Part shown: positions 6,599 through 37,919 of the stretch, one piece after another
Numbering within the stretch: the first letter of the stretch is position 1
Layout of the letters: every line of letters starts with the position of its first letter
Sequence record: MK064562.1
Direction: 5' to 3' (one strand)
Length of the DNA: 37,919 nt
Program-made: the position numbers and the translations under genes
The notes under the pieces: generated by a model
Databases searched by the model: none
What the model saw: the letters and a program-made list of their open reading frames with translations, nothing else
What the model was told of the DNA's origin: nothing

Positions 6599-8364
6599 AG
6601 TAAATCATCCTCCTTTTCAATTGTTAATGTATATTCTTTGTCCTCTTCTGTGGCTATTTCAACCCTTACTCCTTCTATTCGTACTGGTATGTGCGTTCCC
6701 GGTTTTGCTATTCTGAATATTGTCCTATCAAATATGTAGTTGTCAAGTCCTAGGATTCTGGTCACGTCTTCTAGCAATGTCGGGTTCTCGTGTGCTAGGT
6801 TTAACACGTTTTCGAGGAATGTTAGATATATGCCTTCTCTTTGTATTATTTGTAATAGTGTTACGTAAGGTCTTTCGAAACTATACGTACCGTGTTCATG
6901 AATTTCGAAGTACGCGTGTATGTATTCGTGAAATGTGGCGATCATGTATAATGTTTCTAGTGTGTCTTTCTCAGCCATTCCCAGTTCCGGGGCTTCTATT
7001 TTTGTCATTATCCTGGGTGGGGATAGGAATATATACTGTTTTTCAGCGAATTTTGTTATTCCTAATAAATCGCTCGTTTGGTACGCGTAACTGTCCTTTA
7101 ACACGAATAGGGGTATTTTTTGTAGTTTATAATCTAGTATTGCGTAATCGTTTGTTATCCCGAGGAAAGCTAATACTGTGTTAAATGCCCATAATCCTGC
7201 TAATACTCCTTTCTTTATGTCATCAGGCAGTTCTGCGAACTTGTATGAGTTGTTTAAAAGTATCATTATGTCTCTATTTTGAGAATATTCTTTTGCCGTG
7301 AATGCCTCATATCCTTTCTTTCTAATTCTATTTACAACAGTTTCAAATATGTAATCATATTGTATATTGAATCCGAACCCGTTACCTATCATTATTATTT
7401 CTTTTAACGATCCTACAATGATCGGCTTTACATCAAAGGCTTTAGCTATTGAGATTATTGCGTCTGCAAATACGTCATTCAGCTCTACCATGATGGGGCT
7501 ATAATCACCCGGGAAGTTAAACAAGAACGCGTTCCCCTCTTTTTTCCCGTTTTCTATAATCGCTTCCTTTATTAGTTCTTTGTCTTCATTTGATAATTTG
7601 CCGAGTTGTTCGTATAACGTTGAGTTATATGGATTTACTTTTGTGCGGTATTGGTCTGCGTATACACAACATAAGTTAACGCTAAACGGTAGATCCCACT
7701 TTCCGGAATACATCCCGTTGTGGTATACATTACGTCCTTCTTTCAACACTTGGGTTTTTCCCTTCCACAATAAATCAATGTCAAGTTTTTTCCCTTCCAC
7801 GTAAACGGTGGTTTGTCCTTTTGTTTCAGCTTTTCCCCGTAATACAACAAGTCTACACATGTCATCTACGTCTTTGATTTTTATTGTCCCGTTACAATAC
7901 CCCGCGAACATGTATGCGTGGTTATCAGTTAACACGAGTGCGGTTTTTCCGATTAGTAACATGGTACCCATTGCTTGTTTCAGCCCTACCCCGAACTTTC
8001 CTATTAAACAACACGGAGGTTTTGTTTGAGTTGTCTTTGTCGTGAAACCCAATTCAAAGGCTTCCTCACTTATTGCTCCTTCAGACCTTATTACATAATA
8101 ACCGTTTTCGTAATCCAGTTTTACGTTTCTATATGCGTTCAAGAAGTCAAGCGTTTTTTGTATTTCGTTATCAATCGCGTTCTGTAGGAATTCTCGGATA
8201 ACGAATAACAGTAATTGGTTTTCATCTTGTGATGTATACGTGTAAACTGACTCGGACACAGTCCTAAAATAATGTAATCTGATATCGCTTGATATGAACG
8301 CTTCGTCGAAAGTTAGTTTTATTGGTTGGTTTATGGTGATAGGAGGTATTTTTATGAACTCCAT
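6577..8364 (-). CDS. GHKL (Hsp90/MORC-like) ATPase fused to HExxH zincin-like metallopeptidase
   Basis: IREFLQNAIDN, FELGFTTK, IGKFGVGLK; C-terminal FHEYIHAYFEIHEHGTYSF. Confidence 0.85.
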   Translation of the reverse strand: MEFIKIPPITINQPIKLTFDEAFISSDIRLHYFRTVSESVYTYTSQDENQLLLFVIREFLQNAIDNEIQKTLDFLNAYRNVKLDYENGYYVIRSEGAISEEAFELGFTTKTTQTKPPCCLIGKFGVGLKQAMGTMLLIGKTALVLTDNHAYMFAGYCNGTIKIKDVDDMCRLVVLRGKAETKGQTTVYVEGKKLDIDLLWKGKTQVLKEGRNVYHNGMYSGKWDLPFSVNLCCVYADQYRTKVNPYNSTLYEQLGKLSNEDKELIKEAIIENGKKEGNAFLFNFPGDYSPIMVELNDVFADAIISIAKAFDVKPIIVGSLKEIIMIGNGFGFNIQYDYIFETVVNRIRKKGYEAFTAKEYSQNRDIMILLNNSYKFAELPDDIKKGVLAGLWAFNTVLAFLGITNDYAILDYKLQKIPLFVLKDSYAYQTSDLLGITKFAEKQYIFLSPPRIMTKIEAPELGMAEKDTLETLYMIATFHEYIHAYFEIHEHGTYSFERPYVTLLQIIQREGIYLTFLENVLNLAHENPTLLEDVTRILGLDNYIFDRTIFRIAKPGTHIPVRIEGVRVEIATEEDKEYTLTIEKEDDLLSFQLST

Positions 8365-9439: not shown

Positions 9440-10048
9440 ATGAGGTTTACGGTTTGCGTCCCGTGCGGATGGCTCGCTAAAAGCGAACCTTTATTCCGTA
9501 TTTTCTCTTTTGTGCAAAGCACAGTAAAACATCAAGTGTACTTTCACATGGCTATATCAAACCGTGTGGATTTGAATAGAAGTACGTGCGTTAAGGTAGC
9601 ACTTGATAGGAACGAGGACTTAATAATGATTGACAGTGATGTTATGCCTTTACAACCCTTTGATGATGTTGTTAACGTATTGAAAGAGGATAAAAAGGGA
9701 GCTGACGTGGTATTGGGTATAATAGCATCTAACATGGGTATACTAATTAGACCGTTTCCGAAAGATTCTTATGTAACCGAGGTGGAATGGGGAAGTCTGG
9801 GTTTCATCTATTTACCTTTAAAAACGTTGAGGAAACTCAAAGTTATAGACTGGTATAAGTATAGTGAGAGTGTACAATACCCCATGTATTTTACATATAC
9901 GCCCAATATGAGTGAAGACGTTGACTTTATCATAAGGATGAAAAAAAGCGGGTTTAAAGTAATTGCGGATAAACGTATTAGGCTTGCACACCAAAAATGG
10001 GCTAACCTTATCGTTGAGAATAACGGTAACATTAATCTAACAATGTGA
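9440..10048 (+). CDS. GT-A (GT2-like) glycosyltransferase, paralog of 29339-29923
   Basis: AISNRVDLNRS, MIDSD (DxD), SEDVDF, C-terminal His. Confidence 0.85.
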   Translation: MRFTVCVPCGWLAKSEPLFRIFSFVQSTVKHQVYFHMAISNRVDLNRSTCVKVALDRNEDLIMIDSDVMPLQPFDDVVNVLKEDKKGADVVLGIIASNMGILIRPFPKDSYVTEVEWGSLGFIYLPLKTLRKLKVIDWYKYSESVQYPMYFTYTPNMSEDVDFIIRMKKSGFKVIADKRIRLAHQKWANLIVENNGNINLTM

Positions 10049-12924: not shown

Positions 12925-13194
12925 TTATAGTCCTCCTAATAGTCTTCTGAATACTCCACCTAAGCCTCTGAATACGCCTATTCTTCCGAACGCTCCCAGC
13001 ACTAAGGCTATTACTACTCCTATTACAGCCACAACTCCGAACAGTTGACCTAATGGGTTAGCGAAGCTACTTAAAACGTTTGCAAGGCTTTGTACGGCAT
13101 ATGCTATAAAGCTTATGAAGCTTGTTAACAATGATGTTAGGGCATTTGTTAAGGTCGTTATAGCTGAACTTATGCTACTCACGATCTCTAACAC
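12925..13194 (-). CDS. Small membrane protein, amphipathic N-terminus, TM and basic Gly-rich C-terminus (candidate envelope protein)
   Basis: 89 aa from GTG 13194 (GTG 13182 also fits the GAGGTG SD); GVVAVIGVVIALVLGAFG. Confidence 0.8.
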   Translation of the reverse strand: MLEIVSSISSAITTLTNALTSLLTSFISFIAYAVQSLANVLSSFANPLGQLFGVVAVIGVVIALVLGAFGRIGVFRGLGGVFRRLLGGL

Positions 13195-20350: not shown

Positions 20351-21277
20351 TTAGAAGAGTTGCAATTGCTTAATCACCTCTTTAACATAAAATTTTTCAG
20401 CGTGTTTTTTAATTTTTCTCGATAATTCTTCATAATCTTCCCGTTTCATTCCCCTTGCGTATTCCGTCAACTCCAACATTTCCTTTTCATCAAAATAATA
20501 GAAACGATGGGGCATTGCAGGAGTATCAATTACGTCGTAACCCTGACACTTGACGGAGAGACCTATTAACCAGTCCTTATAAGCGTGACACTCCGGGAAA
20601 ATGGGTATCGTACCCACTCCCATAGCCTCAACGGGAGGGAGACCGAACCCCTCACTGTGGGATAACGCTAAGTAAAACCTAGCCCTAGCTAATAACAGGT
20701 ACTTCTCTTCCTGTGTTAGTGAATGGTATTTTATATCCGCAAAAGAATCATGAGATACGAGGACTTTCTTACCCTTCACGAGACGGTAAAGTTTTACATT
20801 CTTTTTATCATATATGACAGTGTCGTTATCCATATACACATAACGTGAAACTTTAAACCACTTTTTATCATTAGTCCTAATATTCGCTCCTATCATTACG
20901 AAATCCAGATCTTTCGTTTTCACTTCCGTTTTACTTATTGTCTTTTCATCTATGGGTCTCGGGACTATCCCGTCAACGTGGACACCGGCTTCCCTTATCA
21001 TCTCTGCGTTCCAACTGGATGTGGTGTAAACTTTACCCTTGAAGTCCGGGAACTTTTTCGTTATGTGAATAGGCGTGTCCACCCATATGATAATGTCATC
21101 TCTCTCCTTGTGGTGCTGAAAACTGTTGAAAAAGTGGTACGCGTCACTTATGTTCAGCTTTCCTACGCTGAACACTACAGGTATCAATGTGTAATCCGTT
21201 AGATTGTTGTTTATCGTTTGTATTATATACGTGAAACTACACGGACTACAAGGTACATGTGTTATAATACCGTACAT
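20351..21277 (-). CDS. GT-B (GT4-like) glycosyltransferase
   Basis: YTTSSWN, ALSHSEGFGLPPVEAMGVGTIPI. Confidence 0.93.
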   Translation of the reverse strand: MYGIITHVPCSPCSFTYIIQTINNNLTDYTLIPVVFSVGKLNISDAYHFFNSFQHHKERDDIIIWVDTPIHITKKFPDFKGKVYTTSSWNAEMIREAGVHVDGIVPRPIDEKTISKTEVKTKDLDFVMIGANIRTNDKKWFKVSRYVYMDNDTVIYDKKNVKLYRLVKGKKVLVSHDSFADIKYHSLTQEEKYLLLARARFYLALSHSEGFGLPPVEAMGVGTIPIFPECHAYKDWLIGLSVKCQGYDVIDTPAMPHRFYYFDEKEMLELTEYARGMKREDYEELSRKIKKHAEKFYVKEVIKQLQLF

Positions 21278-21309: not shown

Positions 21310-21969
21310 CTATGCGAACTGAATTGTAAACGGAACGAGAAGTGTGTTAGGAGCGTTTAGTTTGAATTGTAAAGCGAAAGGTAAAGTTGTGGTTGAGACG
21401 TAAGTGGTACCGGCACTATTCGTAGTATCAAAAGTGATAGTGAAGTTAGTATAAGTGGTAGACGTGGTTTCAAAACATGAAAATAGGAATGTAATGTTAC
21501 TCTGTTGTACAATTACTGATTGTAATGACGTACACGTACCACTAGCGATACTGTAACTCTTATAAGTCCCGGAAAAGCCAAAGTTTAGTATCCTTTTCAC
21601 AAGTCCTACGGGGTCATCTACTATCCATATCCATTCAATTGTATACGTACCCGGTGATAGATAAAGCGTAGTATTTACTTGGCTGGCAAGAAATTGAAAC
21701 CCGTTAAATGTGGCATAAAGTAAAAGGCTCGTGACCTTCATATTGGCTATAAGGCTAAACGTCCCAGTCCAAACAAAATTACTATATGTCATTGTCACAT
21801 AGATACCTTCCATATAAACCGTAGGTTTTGATGACCCGGATGGAGGTGAATTAGTGAACACTTTATAAAGTACCGAGAGTAATGATGTAAAATTTATGTT
21901 ATTTTTTATCTCATATAATACTTTACCTTGCTGTTTTATCCTCACGATACCGTCAATTTTAACTTTCAC
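21310..21969 (-). CDS. Putative virion (terminal/tail) protein, paralog family member 1
   Basis: 219 aa, Thr/Ser-rich beta strands, many N-x-S/T. Confidence 0.75.
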   Translation of the reverse strand: MKVKIDGIVRIKQQGKVLYEIKNNINFTSLLSVLYKVFTNSPPSGSSKPTVYMEGIYVTMTYSNFVWTGTFSLIANMKVTSLLLYATFNGFQFLASQVNTTLYLSPGTYTIEWIWIVDDPVGLVKRILNFGFSGTYKSYSIASGTCTSLQSVIVQQSNITFLFSCFETTSTTYTNFTITFDTTNSAGTTYVSTTTLPFALQFKLNAPNTLLVPFTIQFA

Positions 21970-23063
21970 TATGATGTCACCGTAATCGCTTCAAGAAAAG
22001 TAATAACGGGTTCTGATGATGATGGAGCGGGTATTTGAATGTTAAAATTACCAAATATTTCAAGACCGCATCCTAAAAATGCTTGATTAGGCGGTGCACA
22101 AGCTGAACATGACAAGTTAACCGCTATTAAGCCCAAATTAGTAACCAAAATACCATTAATATATCCTATTTCACTACTACTACTGATCGGGTTATTGAAT
22201 AACGTTAATAATATAAAATATGGTTGTCCGTTACCTGAGATATATACAAAACCGTTTACTTTACTAACGCCTATAGTACTATAGTTTTGTCCACAATAAG
22301 TATTACTTGTCCCCGCACTAGTAATAACTAGAATACCGTTTTGAACCACAGGATAATAACCCGTATTATTATAGAACATGAATACAAGCCATGTAATTGT
22401 ATTATATTGCTGTGGATTCGTATAGTTATTTATAATTTGTATCTCCCATAGGAATGAATATATAGATGAGCTATTTAATGTAAGAGACAAATTTAATTCT
22501 GCAAATATTACAGGTCCATAATATGTAACGTAACTAGTATATGTACCACTAGCACAACCAAAATTAACATTGGGACATCCAGTACCAACGGTAGCATATG
22601 CAAAACTTATATATAATTTTAATTGACTTATAGTCACAGTTGAACCGGGAGTATAAGTTGCAATATAATATATGATACCTGTTGTTGGACTTATAACTTG
22701 TGGAATACCTGTAACTGCAAGATTCACATTAACTCCACTATTAAGTATTATAATCAGTTGACCACTATATGAACCCGATGATACGGCGGTACTTTGTCTC
22801 AAAGCACCACTAATCGTATTGAGAAAATAATAAGCTCCGGCTTGCGTAACTTGGTTGTGAGCAGATGTTATTTTTTTAACCTTATCCACAACCTTTACCT
22901 TTACTCTCGCTATCTCACCCAGTTTCGGACTCCTACTAATCATATCAACTTCCCTAGTTCCGGTACCTTCAATGATATGTAAATTTAGTTTGAGTTTTAT
23001 TTCTCTCTTCTTCATCTTCTTCAACAAATCCTCAAAGTTAACATTTTGAACCTTAACCTTCAT
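21969..23063 (-). CDS. Putative virion protein, paralog family member 2
   Basis: 364 aa; HNQVTQAG, TISQLKLY, FLWEIQI; paired Cys. Confidence 0.75.
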   Translation of the reverse strand: MKVKVQNVNFEDLLKKMKKREIKLKLNLHIIEGTGTREVDMISRSPKLGEIARVKVKVVDKVKKITSAHNQVTQAGAYYFLNTISGALRQSTAVSSGSYSGQLIIILNSGVNVNLAVTGIPQVISPTTGIIYYIATYTPGSTVTISQLKLYISFAYATVGTGCPNVNFGCASGTYTSYVTYYGPVIFAELNLSLTLNSSSIYSFLWEIQIINNYTNPQQYNTITWLVFMFYNNTGYYPVVQNGILVITSAGTSNTYCGQNYSTIGVSKVNGFVYISGNGQPYFILLTLFNNPISSSSEIGYINGILVTNLGLIAVNLSCSACAPPNQAFLGCGLEIFGNFNIQIPAPSSSEPVITFLEAITVTS

Positions 23064-23099
23064 ATAGTTATTTAAGTATCGCTAAAATAAAAATCTTAT
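23064..23099. promoter_or_regulatory. Bidirectional promoter of the virion cluster
   Basis: 36-bp gap with TTATTTAA (+) and TTTTTATT (-) about 25 nt from each ATG. Confidence 0.55.
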
Positions 23100-23792
23100 A
23101 TGAGTAGTACAAATGCGGTTTACAGTGCATTAGTCAAAAACTCCCTTAGTGTAAGTTGGCAAATAATAACATCAACCGGTTCTACAATATCACCCCAAGC
23201 AATAATATTCCAAATAAACTCAAGAACTGAATTTATAATAGTACTCACGGATGATACATTTAACTCTTATACGGCTACTCAAGTCGTGTTATTAATTAAC
23301 GGTTATAAGATGTTAACCATCCCCATAAATATAGTGAAACAATCCTATCAAACACTCGCAATAGCATTACAAGTTACAGTTGAAGCACAGCCTTGGGAAG
23401 CCAACCTAACACAAGATATACTATACGCATTAGTAGGTTATTTGTATAATTGGACGGTAACACAGTGGTATCTCGTAATAAATAGACCTGTCCTAGCACA
23501 CACAACAAGGACTACCACAGCAGTACATACCACATATTATTGTGCTACATCACAAGTTTCATCCATTGGAAGCGGTAGTGCTAATTACTCTGTAGCCACA
23601 ACAACACCATCAACCGTTTTATCACTCTCAATAAACTATTCCCAATGTCAAGCGATCAAACCAACAACACTTATAATCAGTGATTCATTAGGTAACAAAA
23701 ACACTACATTAATATCAGGCATTGAATCAACAACGTGTCCTTACGGTAAATCATGCACTGCAACACTTATTATCCATTTCAACGCATTTTAA
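23100..23792 (+). CDS. Putative virion protein, paralog family member 3
   Basis: 230 aa; SYTATQVVL; Thr-rich. Confidence 0.75.
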   Translation: MSSTNAVYSALVKNSLSVSWQIITSTGSTISPQAIIFQINSRTEFIIVLTDDTFNSYTATQVVLLINGYKMLTIPINIVKQSYQTLAIALQVTVEAQPWEANLTQDILYALVGYLYNWTVTQWYLVINRPVLAHTTRTTTAVHTTYYCATSQVSSIGSGSANYSVATTTPSTVLSLSINYSQCQAIKPTTLIISDSLGNKNTTLISGIESTTCPYGKSCTATLIIHFNAF

Positions 23793-23795
23793 AAT

Positions 23796-24152
23796 ATGGC
23801 ACAAGCAGTACTTGGTATATTGGGATCTATAGGTGGTGGGATAGGAGGAGGACTAAGCGGTATTGCGGATGCCATAGGTAGGGTTGTAAGCGGGATAGTT
23901 AGAACTGTGGGAAGGGGGTTTGACACCATTGCTAGAGCTTTCGGTAAATTCGTTGACTGGTTTTCACGAATCGCGTCACGACTCGCAAGGCTTATATTAC
24001 ATTATTTCCGTATCCTAGCACGGTACTTTTTAGTATTACTTAAATACTCAGCTAGAGTAATGATAAACTTTTACAATAATTTTCAACGTGACCCTCTAAC
24101 TTCATTACAATTTATTGGTAGTATGGCAATACTCATAAATAGTGGTCTATAA
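23796..24152 (+). CDS. Amphipathic-helix protein (candidate envelope-associated)
   Basis: 118 aa; Gly-rich N-terminus, about 11-residue periodicity, Arg-rich. Confidence 0.75.
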   Translation: MAQAVLGILGSIGGGIGGGLSGIADAIGRVVSGIVRTVGRGFDTIARAFGKFVDWFSRIASRLARLILHYFRILARYFLVLLKYSARVMINFYNNFQRDPLTSLQFIGSMAILINSGL

Positions 24153-24562
24153 TGAGCATCCCGATTCCTGATGAAATAAAACCGTTTACAAAAAACATAC
24201 AATTTGATGTTAATTCGCAGTCGTTTATAGTAACGATATCTGCAAAACTATTCTTTTCAACACTATTAGCAAACCAGACAGTAAACCAAAACACGACAAA
24301 TTTCAACATTTTAAATGTCACGAAAGCCAACGAAAAGATTTACGTTTATGTAAAGCCTAACGTTAACCTAACCGACCCTTTCGAGGGGTTTGAAGGGAGA
24401 TTCGTTATTAACCAAGCAAAATTAGATAAGATGATACTTGAGAACGCACAAAACGTAAGAATTTATTATAAACAAGAAAACGATGACCTCTTAATCCTAC
24501 TTGTAGTACCGATGGGTGATATAAGTGCCAAAAGTCCAAGTACTTCTCCAGTTGGCTGGTAA
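24152..24562 (+). CDS. Hypothetical protein in the virion cluster
   Basis: 136 aa; TAATG overlap. Confidence 0.75.
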   Translation: MSIPIPDEIKPFTKNIQFDVNSQSFIVTISAKLFFSTLLANQTVNQNTTNFNILNVTKANEKIYVYVKPNVNLTDPFEGFEGRFVINQAKLDKMILENAQNVRIYYKQENDDLLILLVVPMGDISAKSPSTSPVGW

Positions 24563-25226
24563 AGTAGAAATTGACGCTACGTACAAGAACACAATAAACA
24601 ACTCGTTCATAAATTACCTAAATCAAGCACTCCAAGGTCAACAGCCACTAATTAAATCGTACCAAATATACGAATCTATAAACAACGTTACCGTGCCTGC
24701 AACGATAACTAAAACGACTACAGAGTTAAACCAAATAACGATCACACTACAAGCCCTACTTCAGAACCTCCAGTCCAACAACGTAGACTTGCATTTACAA
24801 GCTGTCCTAACTAACAACAGTCTGGTAGAAATAGCGTCCGTCTCAACGACAGTTCAAGTACTGTTAGGAAAAGCCGTGATAACGTGGACTATAATAATAA
24901 ACATTAACACATTCCAATCCGGTATACTCGTAAACTTCTTTCCCCTATACCAGTTCTTACTGAACTTCTTCACTAACAGTACACTATTAAAACAACAAGC
25001 TCCGCAGATTAACGTTACTCCCACACCGTACGCACAAAATATACAAGGTCTGTCATTTACTATTATTTATAACAACTACCAACAGGGTGGGAATTGCCCG
25101 ATTGTGGTAATGACCCTTTATTACATATTACTGGGTAATACGGTATTGAGTGTTGAGTACGGCTTTATATGTACACCGTCACCATCGCTATTAAACTTCT
25201 TCGAGTTCTCATTAAATATTTCATAA
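24525..25226 (+). CDS. Putative virion protein, paralog family member 4
   Basis: 233 aa; YKNTINNSF, VEIAS, ITWTIII. Confidence 0.75.
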   Translation: MPKVQVLLQLAGKVEIDATYKNTINNSFINYLNQALQGQQPLIKSYQIYESINNVTVPATITKTTTELNQITITLQALLQNLQSNNVDLHLQAVLTNNSLVEIASVSTTVQVLLGKAVITWTIIININTFQSGILVNFFPLYQFLLNFFTNSTLLKQQAPQINVTPTPYAQNIQGLSFTIIYNNYQQGGNCPIVVMTLYYILLGNTVLSVEYGFICTPSPSLLNFFEFSLNIS

Positions 25227-25261
25227 TATATAAAAATGTATAACCAAAGGATTTCATATCA

Positions 25262-25612
25262 TTGACTATGAGACTTTTTATATTCACAATAAAATATAAT
25301 TTCATGCAAGCTGAAAAAATATACCTTATGGAGTTAATTGAAAAAATAAAAAATTTCGCAGACAATGAACCACCGAGCATGAAAACGTTCTCCGTTAAGC
25401 CCGACTTCACGAAAGAAGAATTAATAAACGCTATGATCCGGGTAGGTTTTGAATTAACACACATAGATTACGTGATAAGACATACTACACAAACCCACAT
25501 GTGGGAAATGGAATTCAAACTAAACGAACATAAATACTGTCTTATGACTACGTTCATAATAATAACGGATGGCTCAACAACTGATTATAATATAACTTGT
25601 TACTACAGATAA
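25262..25612 (+). CDS. Hypothetical charged protein inside the virion cluster
   Basis: 116 aa (MQAEK start plausible); composition unlike its neighbours. Confidence 0.7.
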   Translation: MTMRLFIFTIKYNFMQAEKIYLMELIEKIKNFADNEPPSMKTFSVKPDFTKEELINAMIRVGFELTHIDYVIRHTTQTHMWEMEFKLNEHKYCLMTTFIIITDGSTTDYNITCYYR

Positions 25613-25682
25613 TACGTTTACTTATATAGCACGTGATTCATGATAATCATTTTTTTACTCGTACACGTATTTTTACATATGA

Positions 25683-25708
25683 AAGTAAAGTTGAGAAGTA
25701 AAGTTGAG
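25683..25708 (+). repeat. Perfect 13-bp tandem repeat
   Basis: AAGTAAAGTTGAG x2. Confidence 0.85.
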
Positions 25709-25718
25709 GTGAAACTTA

Positions 25719-26708
25719 GTGCAAATCAAGTTGAGGGGCAGAGTACAAATAGTAATAGGAAAGACAAGGATAGCGAAAACAAATGACGTCAGTTCGGATT
25801 TCGCTATCGCACTAGGAAAAACGGTACTTTCAGGCACATTAGGAGGTTACGGTTACGGATCCGGGTTCGCATTACCAACACAAGTAGTAATCGTATTACT
25901 TAACAATAACGCAGTAGTTACAACAATATCAACAAACATAACTAAATTCAACGACCAAATAACAACCAACGGTGAACTAACAAGTGTAACGTTCGTAGGA
26001 AGTGACGCAACACCGGTACAATATACATTTAACCAGCTTGAATTATACACTGTAGTCCAGAACACACTTTACCTGAAAATAGCCACAGTAACATTACAGA
26101 ACCCACTAACAAAAAACATCAACGATATAGTAAACGTAACGTGGACTGAGGAAATAATATCATCATCTTCACTGATAAATTTCACAAACACACAACAAGC
26201 GTGTTCACAATGCTCAACCACATGTAACACGTCAACGTTATCACAAGCGTCAAACACGGCAAGTGTGGTTAACCTCGTGTGGGCATTACTCATAATACCG
26301 AACGCTAATACAATAGTCTCACAAATATCAACCCCGTTGTCAAGCTACATAACACAAGTATACACGTATTACTTAGCAAATAATAAACTACCTAACATTC
26401 TAGGAATAACGAACATTATCCTAACAGACCAATGCCTTAACGTGATAGAAAACGCGTCAATTGTATCACCTATCATAACGTATGGTTTAACCGGAACCGA
26501 AGCCATAGTATCACTCGCAGTGTTCATTACACCCGCACAAAGCGTGTATTACGCGTTACCAGTCTTCACAATACAAGGCGTACTATCTGCGTTTTTAGGA
26601 ATAGTACAAGTACAAAACCCGAGTCAAGTAACAGCAGGTCAAATAAGCATAATATTACAAATACCGTACGGCTCATCAACATTACAAGCATTAAACATAA
26701 ATGAGTGA
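25719..26708 (+). CDS. Putative virion protein, paralog family member 5
   Basis: 329 aa; GTG after GAGGTGA; YTFNQLELY, LTKNINDIVNVTW. Confidence 0.8.
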   Translation: MQIKLRGRVQIVIGKTRIAKTNDVSSDFAIALGKTVLSGTLGGYGYGSGFALPTQVVIVLLNNNAVVTTISTNITKFNDQITTNGELTSVTFVGSDATPVQYTFNQLELYTVVQNTLYLKIATVTLQNPLTKNINDIVNVTWTEEIISSSSLINFTNTQQACSQCSTTCNTSTLSQASNTASVVNLVWALLIIPNANTIVSQISTPLSSYITQVYTYYLANNKLPNILGITNIILTDQCLNVIENASIVSPIITYGLTGTEAIVSLAVFITPAQSVYYALPVFTIQGVLSAFLGIVQVQNPSQVTAGQISIILQIPYGSSTLQALNINE

Positions 26709-27588
26709 TAAAATGCCCGTTACTACCGATTTCATCAATTTAGCAGAACAACTTACACTTAACGGATATAAGAGTACATCCGCATATGTACAAGGTCTCC
26801 AAGTCCAAAGTACGTTCTACATAGTCCTGTTAAATAACGGGAACGTGGTAGCACAACTCCCCGTTTCACAATTCAAGTATAACGAAATAAGCCAAAACGA
26901 GCAAGCACTTGTATACACTGCAATTGACAGTAGTTCAAACACGTATACGTTCAACGAGGTACAATTATGGGCTGGTAACCAATACATTATAACAGATGAT
27001 ATACTACAACAGAGCGTTACGAAAAACCCGGGAATTTCCGTAACCGTAAACGTTGCAATAGAGCTTTCAATAGAGACTAATACTTATCAAGGAACGATCA
27101 ACATAACACGTATAACACCCGTAGGACCTGTGCAAACACCGATCCCGGCATACTCATTCTGGTTATACGTATCGGGTAACTGTCACGCCATATCCACACC
27201 CATCTTCATAGTAAATTACATCATCCTCACGTTACTTATACCAACGTCATTCTATAATAATATACAAAACACGTTGTTCATGCAAACGTATAACCAACTA
27301 AACGTCCCCATAAACGAGTTTAACGGAATCTCACTAATTGCCGTAGCGTTACCTTCAGCGATTATAAATATCGCAAATAGGCTAATCCCGCAAAGCGTGT
27401 CTTATCAATGTACGACCTTACCACCTAATACACCGTTTAAACCTTCCACGACATATTCCTCAACTCTTGTAGGAGCATTCATGGACATGGGAGGAATTAA
27501 AGTACAAGTAATAACAATACTCAATAAGCAACTACTCGCCACAACAAACTATTACATATTTCAAATAGTGGTGATACAAAATGAGTAA
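26701..27588 (+). CDS. Putative virion protein, paralog family member 6
   Basis: 295 aa; YTFNEVQLW, VTKNPGISVTV. Confidence 0.8.
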   Translation: MSDKMPVTTDFINLAEQLTLNGYKSTSAYVQGLQVQSTFYIVLLNNGNVVAQLPVSQFKYNEISQNEQALVYTAIDSSSNTYTFNEVQLWAGNQYIITDDILQQSVTKNPGISVTVNVAIELSIETNTYQGTINITRITPVGPVQTPIPAYSFWLYVSGNCHAISTPIFIVNYIILTLLIPTSFYNNIQNTLFMQTYNQLNVPINEFNGISLIAVALPSAIINIANRLIPQSVSYQCTTLPPNTPFKPSTTYSSTLVGAFMDMGGIKVQVITILNKQLLATTNYYIFQIVVIQNE

Positions 27589-29332
27589 CCCACTAATAGA
27601 TATCGAGAAATTATTTACCGGCATTTTCAGACCCGTCACTAACGTACTTAGCGGAGGCATTAACACAGTAGCGTCAATTCCTCATGATATCGAAAATTTC
27701 GGGAACTCGGTTGTGAAGACATTTAACACACTAGTACGATATCTCGCACAAATACCAAGTGATATATTCAACTTTCTATCACAAATTCCCGGTGCGATCC
27801 TCACCGGGTTACACATGTTCGGTTCATGGATACTCTCAGGGTTCCAAACTTTAGGTTCCCACATATTGGGAGCGTTAAAAATAGCGTTCTCACCACTGGT
27901 TGACGCCATACATTACATAGCATCCCATATACCCGACCTAATAAACTTCTTCGCTTCAATCTACACCGACCTAAGAAACATTATAAACACGATACATAAC
28001 AACCTTGTAAATATCTTCACAACAGCGTTCAGACTCGTACAAGACGCGATTGAAATCGTGTTCGGCTTCCTAAACGTGGCTCCTCAGATATTCAGAGCAT
28101 TTAGTATATTTGTACAAGATGCAATAAATTTCGTAACAACACAAGCTACAACACTAGTATCATCCGCATCACAAATGTACAAACACTTTACGGACTCAGT
28201 ACCCTTTGACATCTTAAAACAAGAATCATCAAAATTCGGCAAAGCTACGGCAAGATTGATCGGGTTTAACACTGCAATGGAAATAATGAAAAGTACAATA
28301 AGAAGGAGTTGGCTATCACAAAACATATCACCCTTAACAAGGGCGTTAATGTTAGCGTTCAGCCCTGTGGTAGCAGGTATCAGCGGGATGTTTGCGGAAA
28401 CAATGATACAAGCGTTCTACCCGGATATCACATCAACAACAATAAAGAGGTACACGCCACCAACCACATCCACGACACTATTCCCGTATCATACAACTCA
28501 TGTAGAACCACCATCGTTCGCGTCAAAGAGTTACATAACAACACTGTCACAATTAACACCACCATCGGCTCCTCCATTGTTACCGCAATTCAAACCGGGT
28601 CACATAATAAGCATATACATCGAAGACGTCATAACACTAAACCAGTTCGTAGTAACCGGTGGTCTGGTATCAGCATCACAGTACGCACAAATAATATCCG
28701 ACACATTAAACTTACAGTACAATTTAGTGGTAAGACTGACACCCGTAGTTTTAATATCCGCCACAGACTTAGTAAGTCCCTTACTATCATCATCCATTAC
28801 CACAGCAGTCTCACAAAACGTGAACACGATCACAGTAAACGCTTTCGCAGAAGTAGGACAACTAGCAGTACCCCTAGGTTCATCTGTGTGTACCACGTTA
28901 ATAGCTCCGGCTTCATACGTTTACGGTGAAAACACGGTAGATTACTTAAATGTAGCATACAACTTATGTATAAACATAAACCAGGCAATACTTGACTTCA
29001 TTAACTTCTACATCACAACACAACCACCACCCGGTAATGTACCCACTACTACTGTAAACATCTTCATCACAACACAACCACCACCCGGTAACGTACCTAC
29101 AACTGTAGTAAACATTACGGGTACTACAATATTACCTCCTCCTAATATACCAACCACCATATTCAGTATAACAATAACACCCGGATTACCACAATTCACG
29201 GGACACACTACCCTTGCGTTCACAACTCAAAACGTGACAACCAGAATCGGAGGGACTGCTACAACAATAGTTATAAATTACACGCCAACTATAACAATAT
29301 GCCTACAAGGGGATGGATGTTATTCAGCGTGA
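27581..29332 (+). CDS. Large putative virion protein: 11-mer amphipathic repeats plus Pro/Thr-rich C-terminus
   Basis: 583 aa; AQIPSDIFNFL/SQIPGAILTGL/HMFGSWILSGF; ITTQPPPGNVPTT repeats. Confidence 0.8.
   Translation: MSNPLIDIEKLFTGIFRPVTNVLSGGINTVASIPHDIENFGNSVVKTFNTLVRYLAQIPSDIFNFLSQIPGAILTGLHMFGSWILSGFQTLGSHILGALKIAFSPLVDAIHYIASHIPDLINFFASIYTDLRNIINTIHNNLVNIFTTAFRLVQDAIEIVFGFLNVAPQIFRAFSIFVQDAINFVTTQATTLVSSASQMYKHFTDSVPFDILKQESSKFGKATARLIGFNTAMEIMKSTIRRSWLSQNISPLTRALMLAFSPVVAGISGMFAETMIQAFYPDITSTTIKRYTPPTTSTTLFPYHTTHVEPPSFASKSYITTLSQLTPPSAPPLLPQFKPGHIISIYIEDVITLNQFVVTGGLVSASQYAQIISDTLNLQYNLVVRLTPVVLISATDLVSPLLSSSITTAVSQNVNTITVNAFAEVGQLAVPLGSSVCTTLIAPASYVYGENTVDYLNVAYNLCININQAILDFINFYITTQPPPGNVPTTTVNIFITTQPPPGNVPTTVVNITGTTILPPPNIPTTIFSITITPGLPQFTGHTTLAFTTQNVTTRIGGTATTIVINYTPTITICLQGDGCYSA
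29011..29118 (+). repeat. 54-bp tandem repeat (2 near-identical copies plus a degenerate third)
   Basis: CATCACAACACAACCACCACCCGGTAA at 29011 and 29065. Confidence 0.9.
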
Positions 29333-29338
29333 TGTAAT

Positions 29339-29923
29339 ATGTTAGTATGCATACCTGTTGGATGGGTATCTTATACTGAACCACTTCTCAACACTGTAAA
29401 GTGGGCAAATGAGGGTAAATTCAAATTCGATTTCGCCATATCAAACCGCGTAGACTTAAATAGAAGTGTATGCATATCTAAAGCGAAACTGTTAAAGGAA
29501 GACCTAATAATGATAGACTCAGATATAAACGTATTAAACCCACCATTACAGTTAAAAGAAATATTAAAAGAAGATGAACGGGAAGCCGATATCGTATTGG
29601 GGATAGCAGTAAGCCACCTGGGAGTTTTAATAGACCCATTACCGCCTAAGGACAAAGACCTATACGAAATAAATTGGGGATCATTATCATTCGTTTACAT
29701 ACCGTTCAAGACATTAAGAAAACTGAAGCACATAGCTAAATACCCGCAAAATATAAACATGTACATGACGTACAAACCCTACACATCAGAAGACGTTGAA
29801 TTCATAAGGAGATTAAAAAAGAAAGGGTTCAAGGTTATGGCTGACAAGAGGATAGCGTTAAACCACTTTAAACTCGTACCACTGCGTTACATGTCCCTTG
29901 AGTTCGAAGTACAAACAAAATGA
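29339..29923 (+). CDS. GT-A (GT2-like) glycosyltransferase, paralog of 9440-10048
   Basis: AISNRVDLNRS, MIDSD, WGSL, SEDVEF, LNH. Confidence 0.85.
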   Translation: MLVCIPVGWVSYTEPLLNTVKWANEGKFKFDFAISNRVDLNRSVCISKAKLLKEDLIMIDSDINVLNPPLQLKEILKEDEREADIVLGIAVSHLGVLIDPLPPKDKDLYEINWGSLSFVYIPFKTLRKLKHIAKYPQNINMYMTYKPYTSEDVEFIRRLKKKGFKVMADKRIALNHFKLVPLRYMSLEFEVQTK

Positions 29924-37785: not shown

Positions 37786-37919
37786 GGTTTTTTTCGGGCA
37801 TAAATGTGGAAGATACGGGGGGTTGGTATAGAAAAAATAAGGGGTGGAATTCGCGTGAAAAAAACGTGGGGTGGCGTAAAATGGTCGCGAAAAATACGTG
37901 CGTAAAAGTGAAGAAAATG
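37786..37919 (-). repeat. Right inverted terminal repeat (window ends inside it)
   Basis: Reverse complement of 175-308. Confidence 0.97.

Follow-up and report, generated by a model that had tools for sequence, protein, structure and literature searches.

We identified in the genome of Sulfolobales Beppu filamentous virus 1 (SBFV1; Lipothrixviridae, Alphalipothrixvirus) a previously undescribed, lipothrixvirus-specific family of six paralogous proteins, gp42, gp43, gp44, gp47, gp49 and gp50; sequence as well as structure unites five of these, and gp44 is joined to them only structurally. The stretch of DNA that we analysed (the window, 37,919 bp) is identical to GenBank record MK064562.1, in which each of the six is labelled "hypothetical protein". 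We propose that these proteins form one superfamily that arose by old duplications, with an N-terminal domain (N-domain) that would anchor them to the virion end and C-terminal domains that would contact the host, a reading that we favour with moderate confidence. Lipothrixviruses are the main model for enveloped filamentous double-stranded DNA viruses of hyperthermophilic archaea, and almost nothing is known of the proteins that form their host-binding ends. Together with gp45, gp46 and the tape-measure-like gp51, the six genes make up a module of about 8 kb. About one fifth of the genome, formerly "hypothetical", thereby becomes one coherent and testable module, with a six-member paralogous family, a defined N-domain, tape-measure-like partners and a composition typical of acid-exposed glycoproteins.

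The six open reading frames (ORFs) that an earlier sequence-only reading of this DNA had singled out match the annotated coding sequences of the record. On the minus strand, gp42 (219 aa; 21310..21969) carries its N-domain at about residues 1-125 (nt 21595-21969) and has SIFV gp61 and SSRV2 ORF35 as orthologues, and gp43 (364 aa; 21969..23063) has a 50-residue leader followed by the N-domain at about residues 51-212 (nt 22428-22913), the domain proper starting near residue 51 at the second 'VKVKV'; its relatives are SIFV gp60, SSRV2 ORF36 and AFV2 ORF338. The other four lie on the plus strand. In gp44 (230 aa; 23100..23792), the orthologue of SIFV gp58, a shortened domain (about residues 1-96, nt 23100-23387) precedes a second beta domain. 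The gene for gp47 (233 aa; 24525..25226) has a GTG start and overlaps gp46, and its N-domain spans about residues 7-128 (nt 24543-24908). The best-defined member is gp49 (329 aa; 25719..26708), with an N-domain at residues 1-148 (nt 25719-26162) and orthologues in SIFV (gp53) and SBFV2 (gp54). Finally, gp50 (295 aa; 26701..27588; orthologue SIFV gp55) is paralogous to gp49 over its full length and has no first hairpin; its N-domain covers about residues 1-128 (nt 26701-27084). The motifs quoted in the sequence-only reading are all present, namely YTFNQLELY..TKNINDIVNVTW in gp49, YTFNEVQLW..TKNPGISVTV in gp50, VTISQLKLY..YSFLWEI in gp43 and SYTATQVVL in gp44. Its 'M-K/Q-h-K-h' start is found in gp42, gp43 and gp49 and is absent from the remaining three.

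Within the block, gp49 and gp50 are the sole pair found by pairwise BLASTP (E 1e-5), and a Pfam scan of all block proteins (E<=1) returned no match for any of the six, the only match in the block being a weak, sub-threshold one of gp48 to DUF3150. Family profiles were drawn from 83 related loci, with iterative hidden Markov model (HMM) searches run on the ORFs of those loci. Relatives came from the annotated genomes of SBFV2, SIFV, SIFV2, SSRV2 ("SIFV3"), AFV2, SBFV3, AFV3 and AFV9, and from nine IMG/VR loci and 65 metagenomic loci picked by the gp49 motif. In these searches gp49 and gp50 fell into one Jackhmmer family of 172 ORFs from the related loci. An all-against-all hhalign comparison of 17 family profiles then yielded a connected network. 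The gp49 and gp50 families align over 269 columns (100%), and the gp42 family matches both the gp49 family (94.5%, gp42 residues 1-125 against gp49 residues 1-154) and the AFV2 ORF413 family (90%). The SIFV gp60 family matches those of gp43 (96.1%) and gp49 (91%), and the latter two are also linked directly (62%). The gp49 family further matches the AFV2 ORF258 family (95.6%), and the gp47 family matches SSRV2 ORF41 (86.6%) and the gp49 family (41%).

Real links in this network have scores of 30-70. As a null, 132 comparisons were made against column-reversed profiles, which keep composition, and these reached a maximum score of 26.7 (9.6%). Against the six, none of seven unrelated families taken from these genomes reached 7%; among them, the gp51 family gave at most 0.3% against all six families despite its equally odd composition. 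The other 59 proteins of the window showed no domain match when compared with eight profiles (maximum score 25.7). Since their links exceed the reversed-profile null, gp42, gp43, gp47, gp49 and gp50 are joined at the sequence-profile level. Moreover, the alignments are colinear across the whole domain, from residue 1 in gp42 and gp49, and the end of the domain bears the signature Y-T-x-x-Q-L-x-L-Y ... K ... h-x-V-T-W.

A merged N-domain profile, built progressively from 109 sequences, matched gp42 (93.6%), gp43 (94.5%, residues 51-212), gp50 (99.9%) and gp47 (77%, residues 7-128, P 2.1e-5). For gp47, the colinear matches to the gp49 and gp42 families have scores of 32-34 against the null maximum of 26.7, and a database search for extra homologues brought only two new sequences, which did not raise these scores. 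The merged profile gave 1.1% with gp44, and in all profile tests this protein showed no significant link (<=4%, score <=24.7), its best local alignment landing on the same domain motif. Thus, the pattern that the sequence-only reading ascribed to all six joins five of them above the null in the all-against-all comparison, and gp44 is left outside it.

Structure prediction places gp44 with the others. Our own AlphaFold2 models were those of gp49 and gp44, and the folds of gp42, gp43, gp47 and gp50 were compared through the BFVD models of their orthologues. The gp49 model (74 homologues; predicted local distance difference test score, pLDDT, 86.8; predicted template-modelling score, pTM, 0.89) shows an N-domain (residues 1-148) made of a beta-hairpin, a helix (residues 26-38) and six long strands, followed by a C-terminal half with helices at residues 152-221 and a beta domain at residues 227-316. 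In the gp44 model (18 homologues; pLDDT 81.2), a helix (residues 5-13) and six strands (residues 18-93) are followed by a helix and the second beta domain. This layout is that of the gp49 N-domain without the first hairpin, which is also missing from gp50.

When the gp49 model was searched against BFVD with Foldseek, orthologues of all six families were recovered: SBFV2 gp55, of the gp50 type (E 3e-12), the 357-aa SBFV2 orthologue of gp43 (E 3.1e-9), the 219-aa SFV1 orthologue of gp42 (E 3.8e-7, TMt 0.60), the 225-aa SBFV2 orthologue of gp47 (E 7.9e-6) and the 227-aa SBFV2 orthologue of gp44 (E 2.6e-4). Searched in the same way, the gp44 model found SIFV gp60 (1e-6) and AFV2 ORF246 (5e-6), as well as orthologues of gp47 (1.7e-4), gp50, gp49, gp42 and gp43, with values ranging from 1.7e-4 to 9.6e-3. 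Each of the two models thus finds all six families; the comparison of the gp49 model with experimental structures gave no match, as detailed below. A tail-tube or Dit-like fold for gp49 was considered and found to be unsupported, the Foldseek search against the PDB being empty, and when PDB sequences were searched with the profile of the gp49 family, chance matches were all that appeared.

The duplications are real and older than the split of the lipothrixvirus genera. Each lipothrixvirus examined has two or three gp49-type paralogues (SIFV gp53/54/55; AFV2 ORF246/289/286a; SBFV3 gp35-37), and the members of the family pair individually with counterparts elsewhere: gp42 with SIFV gp61, gp43 with SIFV gp60, gp44 with SIFV gp58, gp49 with SIFV gp53, gp50 with SIFV gp55 and gp47 with SSRV2 ORF41. 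As beta-lipothrixviruses and SSRV2 possess a separate counterpart of every paralogue, the duplications must predate the divergence of the genera. Together with the profile links, these counterparts bear out the earlier suggestion that one domain was repeatedly duplicated. The module is present across alpha-, beta- and delta-lipothrixviruses, and its gene order is kept in SBFV2, SIFV, SIFV2, SSRV2, AFV2, SBFV3, AFV7 and metagenomic contigs. In SIFV and SSRV2 it runs on one strand as 45-46-47-49-(54)-50-51-44-43-42 (SBFV1 numbering, with 54 for SIFV gp54). In SBFV1, SFV1 and SBFV2, the 44/43/42 part lies upstream and 43-42 are inverted. The direct orthologues and paralogues of the six (SIFV gp53/gp54/gp55, gp60, gp61 and gp58; AFV2 ORF246/289/286a/338; SBFV3 gp35-37) belong to PHROGs 34282, 38505, 28866 and 30420, and resemble them in module, order, domain and composition; all are uncharacterised proteins. 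Nowhere in the GenBank records and literature consulted did we find these separate 'hypothetical' families united in a single superfamily.

What could such a family do? The six proteins share an N-domain of about 100-150 residues, consisting of an optional beta-hairpin, a helix and six long strands, and differ in their C-terminal parts. We propose that they are low-copy, glycosylated, acid-exposed builders of mop-like terminal structures, in which the common N-domain would serve as the interface for assembly on, or attachment to, the virion end, and the variable C-terminal domains would meet the host surface. Mop-like terminal fibres have indeed been seen on virions of Sulfolobus filamentous virus 1 (SFV1) (PMC6105669), whose genome is 99.2% identical to that of SBFV1 over the 9-kb stretch compared. 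The presumed task resembles that of the fibres at the ends of the related filamentous virions of rudiviruses, such as SIRV2, whose tail fibres bind host pili (PMC10791045), but no rudiviral protein was found among the Foldseek or profile matches and the likeness is an analogy only.

The composition of the proteins argues for an extracellular, acid-exposed location. Charged residues make up 6.4-9.6% of the six (gp42 having 9.6%) and 8.6% of gp51, against a mean of 24.7% in the rest of the proteome. Their serine plus threonine content is 21% versus 11% elsewhere, and N-x-S/T sequons occur 1.68 times per 100 residues versus 0.63. For comparison, the virion-detected capsid proteins and VP1/VP2 (gp12, gp13, gp24 and gp25), which are envelope-enclosed or cytoplasm-like, have 22-24% charged residues. 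Lysine plus arginine amount to only 3-6% of the six, which therefore should give few tryptic peptides. Low lysine and arginine content combined with probable glycosylation could make tryptic mass spectrometry miss low-copy proteins, and the possible oversight of the six by virion proteomics thus has a concrete explanation.

A modular 'anchor plus adhesin' design is made plausible by the likeness of the N-domain to PHROG 5417, a family of tailed-phage proteins described below. The idea is suggested by two cases in which a related domain heads a larger protein. First, the N-termini of SBFV3 gp30 (6736-8001 of the SBFV3 locus) and AFV2 ORF413 (6651-7904 of the AFV2 locus) match the gp42 N-domain (hhalign 90%). 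Both are deltalipothrixvirus proteins; SBFV3 gp30 is labelled 'putative lectin' in its record, and the C-terminal half of both carries ADGFA...VEFDPY motifs. ADGFA and VEFD motifs are typical of L-type (legume) lectins. Second, a protein of 1,285 aa that contains DUF285 and Listeria-Bacteroides repeats begins with a PHROG 5417 domain, and the family also lies among the tail genes of Campylobacter phage CP8.

Several observations weigh against this proposal. When gel bands of purified SFV1 virions were analysed by liquid chromatography-tandem mass spectrometry, VP1-VP8 were identified, namely ORF11, 12, 20, 23, 24, 30, 33 and 34, none of which comes from this block (PMC6105669). Similarly, AFV9 ORF226, a structural relative by Foldseek, is absent from the proteins marked as structural in the AFV9 record. 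The charge-poor composition would fit display on the infected cell equally well. The lectin label of SBFV3 gp30 and AFV2 ORF413 was not confirmed by a Pfam and PDB profile search, leaving a likeness at the level of motifs. Membership of gp44 comes from predicted structure, without sequence-level support, and the BFVD models against which it was compared are themselves predictions. The gp49 model has no match in the PDB by Foldseek (best E 1e-3, TM 0.11-0.2), and for none of the six could an oligomeric state, a fibre shaft or a receptor-binding fold be recognised. In the literature, we found no usable virion proteomics or terminal-protein assignments for SIFV, SSRV2/SIFV3, SBFV or AFV2. Altogether, the status of the six as virion proteins is unproven. 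From their composition and context we favour a terminal, host-contact role, against which the sole published proteomics counts, and we consider that they probably build the host-binding end structures.

A further reading would add to this proposal: the N-domain may be a very divergent member of a caudoviral tail-fibre anchor superfamily comprising PF12571 and PHROG 5417, the lipothrixvirus terminal module sharing ancestry with, or having borrowed genes from, tailed-phage tail tips. We regard it as a serious possibility, albeit one on the less probable side of even. The sequence-only reading had likened the pattern to the baseplate-attachment N-terminal domain of P2 gpH-type tail fibres. In P2 gpH, residues 1-151 correspond to Pfam PF12571, "Phage tail-collar fibre protein, N-terminal" (193 bits). 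PF12571 resembles the lipothrixvirus N-domain in being an N-terminal domain of about 150 residues placed before variable receptor-binding parts, and its E-L-G-L-Y...K recalls the Q-L-E-L-Y...K of gp49. Nonetheless, the six proteins have no PF12571 match in Pfam (E<=1), and a profile of the gpH N-terminal domain (gpH-N) made from 11 diverse phages gave at most 1% by hhalign against every lipothrixvirus family and the merged profile, so that the assignment to a P2 gpH-type domain failed in these sequence tests. Neither PF03406 fibre repeats, other fibre domains nor gpI/gpJ-like baseplate genes were found in or near the six, whose neighbours are instead gp45, gp46, gp51 and glycosyltransferases; the C-terminal halves of gp49 and gp44 are predicted to be globular. 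A phmmer search of the PDB with gpH-N showed that no chain carries PF12571, a family without a solved structure.

The broader tie to head-tail phage tails, also put forward in the sequence-only reading, fared better by another route, in spite of the absent gpH profile similarity. Against BFVD, some twenty caudoviral proteins, all small and uncharacterised, matched the gp49 model (TMt up to 0.64, E from 2e-7 to 8e-5), among them proteins of Campylobacter phage CP8 (186 aa, E 7.1e-6) and Halogranum tailed virus 1. The matches of the gp49 model to entries named 'tail-collar fiber protein' or 'tail fiber protein' are weak (E 6.5e-4 to 7e-3, TM about 0.2, aligned region not reported). The gp44 model matched the same kinds of protein over about 120 columns, with a probability of 0.97-0.99 and E values of 0.05-0.14. 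The CP8 match was assigned to AGS81307 (KF148616, 117420-117980), the sole 186-aa coding sequence of KF148616, which belongs to PHROG 5417, a family with no assigned function; its gene has the baseplate-wedge gene gp6 on one side and the tail-tube genes on the other. For another match, a 320-aa protein of ZC08, no counterpart was identified in the structure paper on DEV (N4-like).

PHROG 5417 has 1,451 representatives (E<=1e-3) among 1.84 billion proteins, mostly stand-alone proteins of 170-270 aa, some with inserted Ig-like domains. The family, exemplified by CP8 AGS81307, is the best structural match of the gp49 N-domain outside lipothrixviruses. It has a comparable N-terminal hairpin with an N-x-V-helix, bears a C-terminal Y-T-E-A-G-L-Y...K...I-T-W-T signature and can be extended at the C-terminus by adhesin-like parts. 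The expanded PHROG 5417 profile aligned with gpH-N colinearly over 102 columns (49.5%, score 32.3; reversed controls 15), and the merged lipothrixvirus profile aligned with PHROG 5417 at 43.8% (score 29.9; controls <=18.4), over just 35 columns that cover the hairpin and helix. PHROG 5417 may thus be a relative of the tail-fibre anchor domain that stands alone and has so far escaped recognition. The domain ends read YTFNQLELY...K...VNVTWT in gp49, YTEAGLY...K...ITWT in PHROG 5417 and RELGLYD...YK in gpH, and an E/Q-x-x-L-Y ... K motif near the domain end is common to the three groups.

The two PHROG 5417 profile alignments, the shared motif, the structural matches of gp49 and gp44 to caudoviral, including tail-collar, proteins, and the presence of the tape-measure-like gp45 and gp51 in the same module all speak for such an anchor superfamily. 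They are opposed by the absence of any direct gpH-N or HMM link (the phrog_5417 HMM found no match among the proteins of the block at E<=0.1), the 35 columns on which the PHROG 5417 alignment depends, the low TM values of the 'tail-collar' alignments, the lack of fibre repeats and of gpI/gpJ-like genes, and the fact that small beta-sandwich-plus-helix domains can converge. The link to gpH is indirect and unproven. True common ancestry of the lipothrixvirus domain, PHROG 5417 and gpH is a minority prospect, and that the N-domain works like a tail-fibre anchor domain is plausible. At the level of the whole module, it is possible, though less likely than not, that the end structures of these enveloped archaeal filamentous viruses (Adnaviria) are built from tape-measure-like gp45 and gp51 together with at least six paralogues, and that this module shares ancestry with tailed-phage tail tips, with an anchor domain in the PHROG 5417/PF12571 superfamily. 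If true, this would connect at the level of genes two virus realms whose virion modules are held to have nothing in common, and, if the caudoviral similarity reflects common descent, Adnaviria and Duplodnaviria would have exchanged host-recognition genes.

It is also conceivable, though rather unlikely in our judgement, that the six lie outside the virion, as glycosylated proteins on or in the envelope of the infected cell, where they might, for instance, exclude superinfecting viruses, help to acquire the envelope or remodel the S-layer or cell surface. Their absence from the SFV1 virion proteome (PMC6105669) would then be expected. In the SFV1 study, the orthologues of gp42, gp47 and gp50 were predicted to have transmembrane segments, glycosyltransferase genes border the module, and a charge-poor composition suits any extracellular site. 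However, the segments of highest hydropathy (only 1.6-1.95) fold chiefly as beta-strands or as a helix that looks buried in the AlphaFold2 models, and a hydropathy scan gave no support for true transmembrane helices. The module contains tape-measure-like proteins, which are typical of virion tails, and the structural relatives in phages belong to tail gene clusters. Mop-like fibres need building blocks, and the non-membrane VPs among the eight detected are highly charged; a low content of lysine and arginine together with glycosylation offers a simple reason for a miss by mass spectrometry.

Lastly, the idea that the resemblance is an artefact of a shared S/T/N/Q/V/I-rich, beta-rich composition and not the product of descent, to which the uniformly unusual composition of the six, the non-significant BLASTP comparisons outside gp49-gp50 and the failure of gp44 in every profile test lend some colour, is very improbable and largely refuted for five of the six members, as gp51 has the same composition and matches none of the six families, composition-keeping reversed profiles stay below all real pairs, the alignments are colinear over the whole domain from residue 1, and Foldseek from two models singles out these very families within a whole viral structure library.

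Besides the six, the block holds gp45, gp46, gp48 and gp51, with glycosyltransferase genes gp41 and gp52 at its borders. On the plus strand, gp45 (118 aa; 23796..24152) is helical, rich in glycine and related to the N-terminal region of gp51 (583 aa; 27581..29332, plus strand), whose N-terminal half is tape-measure-like (27581 to about 28700). Indeed, the gp45 and gp51 families match at 98.9% by hhalign, gp45 being a small paralogue of that N-terminal region. Both weakly match PHROG tape-measure families, gp45 with E 6e-4 and gp51 with E down to 8.9e-8, and the SFV1 authors reported by HHpred a match of the gp51 counterpart to COG5412 'phage-related protein' (P=99.1). In SIFV, AFV2, SBFV3 and SSRV2, gp45 stands at the head of the module. 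Jackhmmer also draws in the envelope protein VP3 (gp21, 12925-13194; E 8e-6), a match that could reflect glycine-zipper or helical-hairpin repeats instead of homology with VP3. Within the gp51 gene, a 54-bp tandem repeat at 29003-29115 (2.1 copies, 86% matches) encodes a repeated ...TTQPPPGNVPTT.V... near the C-terminus.

Between gp47 and gp49, the module is split by gp48 (25268-25612), a protein of ordinary cytoplasm-like composition with 24.6% charged residues. In SBFV2 the corresponding gap measures about 80 bp and holds no counterpart, and none was found at the other loci compared; gp48 looks like a lineage-specific insertion. The module's only sizeable intergenic gap contains a perfect 13-bp direct tandem repeat, AAGTAAAGTTGAG x2, at 25683-25708, its end lying 10 nt before the gp49 start codon, GTG.

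In the wider record, terminal inverted repeats (TIRs) of 134 nt with 99% identity are found at 175-308 on the left and at 37786-37919 on the right, where they reach the last base. Since the left TIR starts only at base 175, the right end of MK064562.1, described as a 'partial genome', is truncated relative to the left. As for the genes that border the module, gp41 (20351..21277, minus strand) is a glycosyltransferase by record annotation, and its homologues adjoin the module in SIFV and SIFV2. On the other side, gp52 (29339-29923, plus strand), also annotated as a glycosyltransferase, is a close paralogue of gp15 (9440-10048), annotated as hypothetical (phmmer E 4.8e-54).

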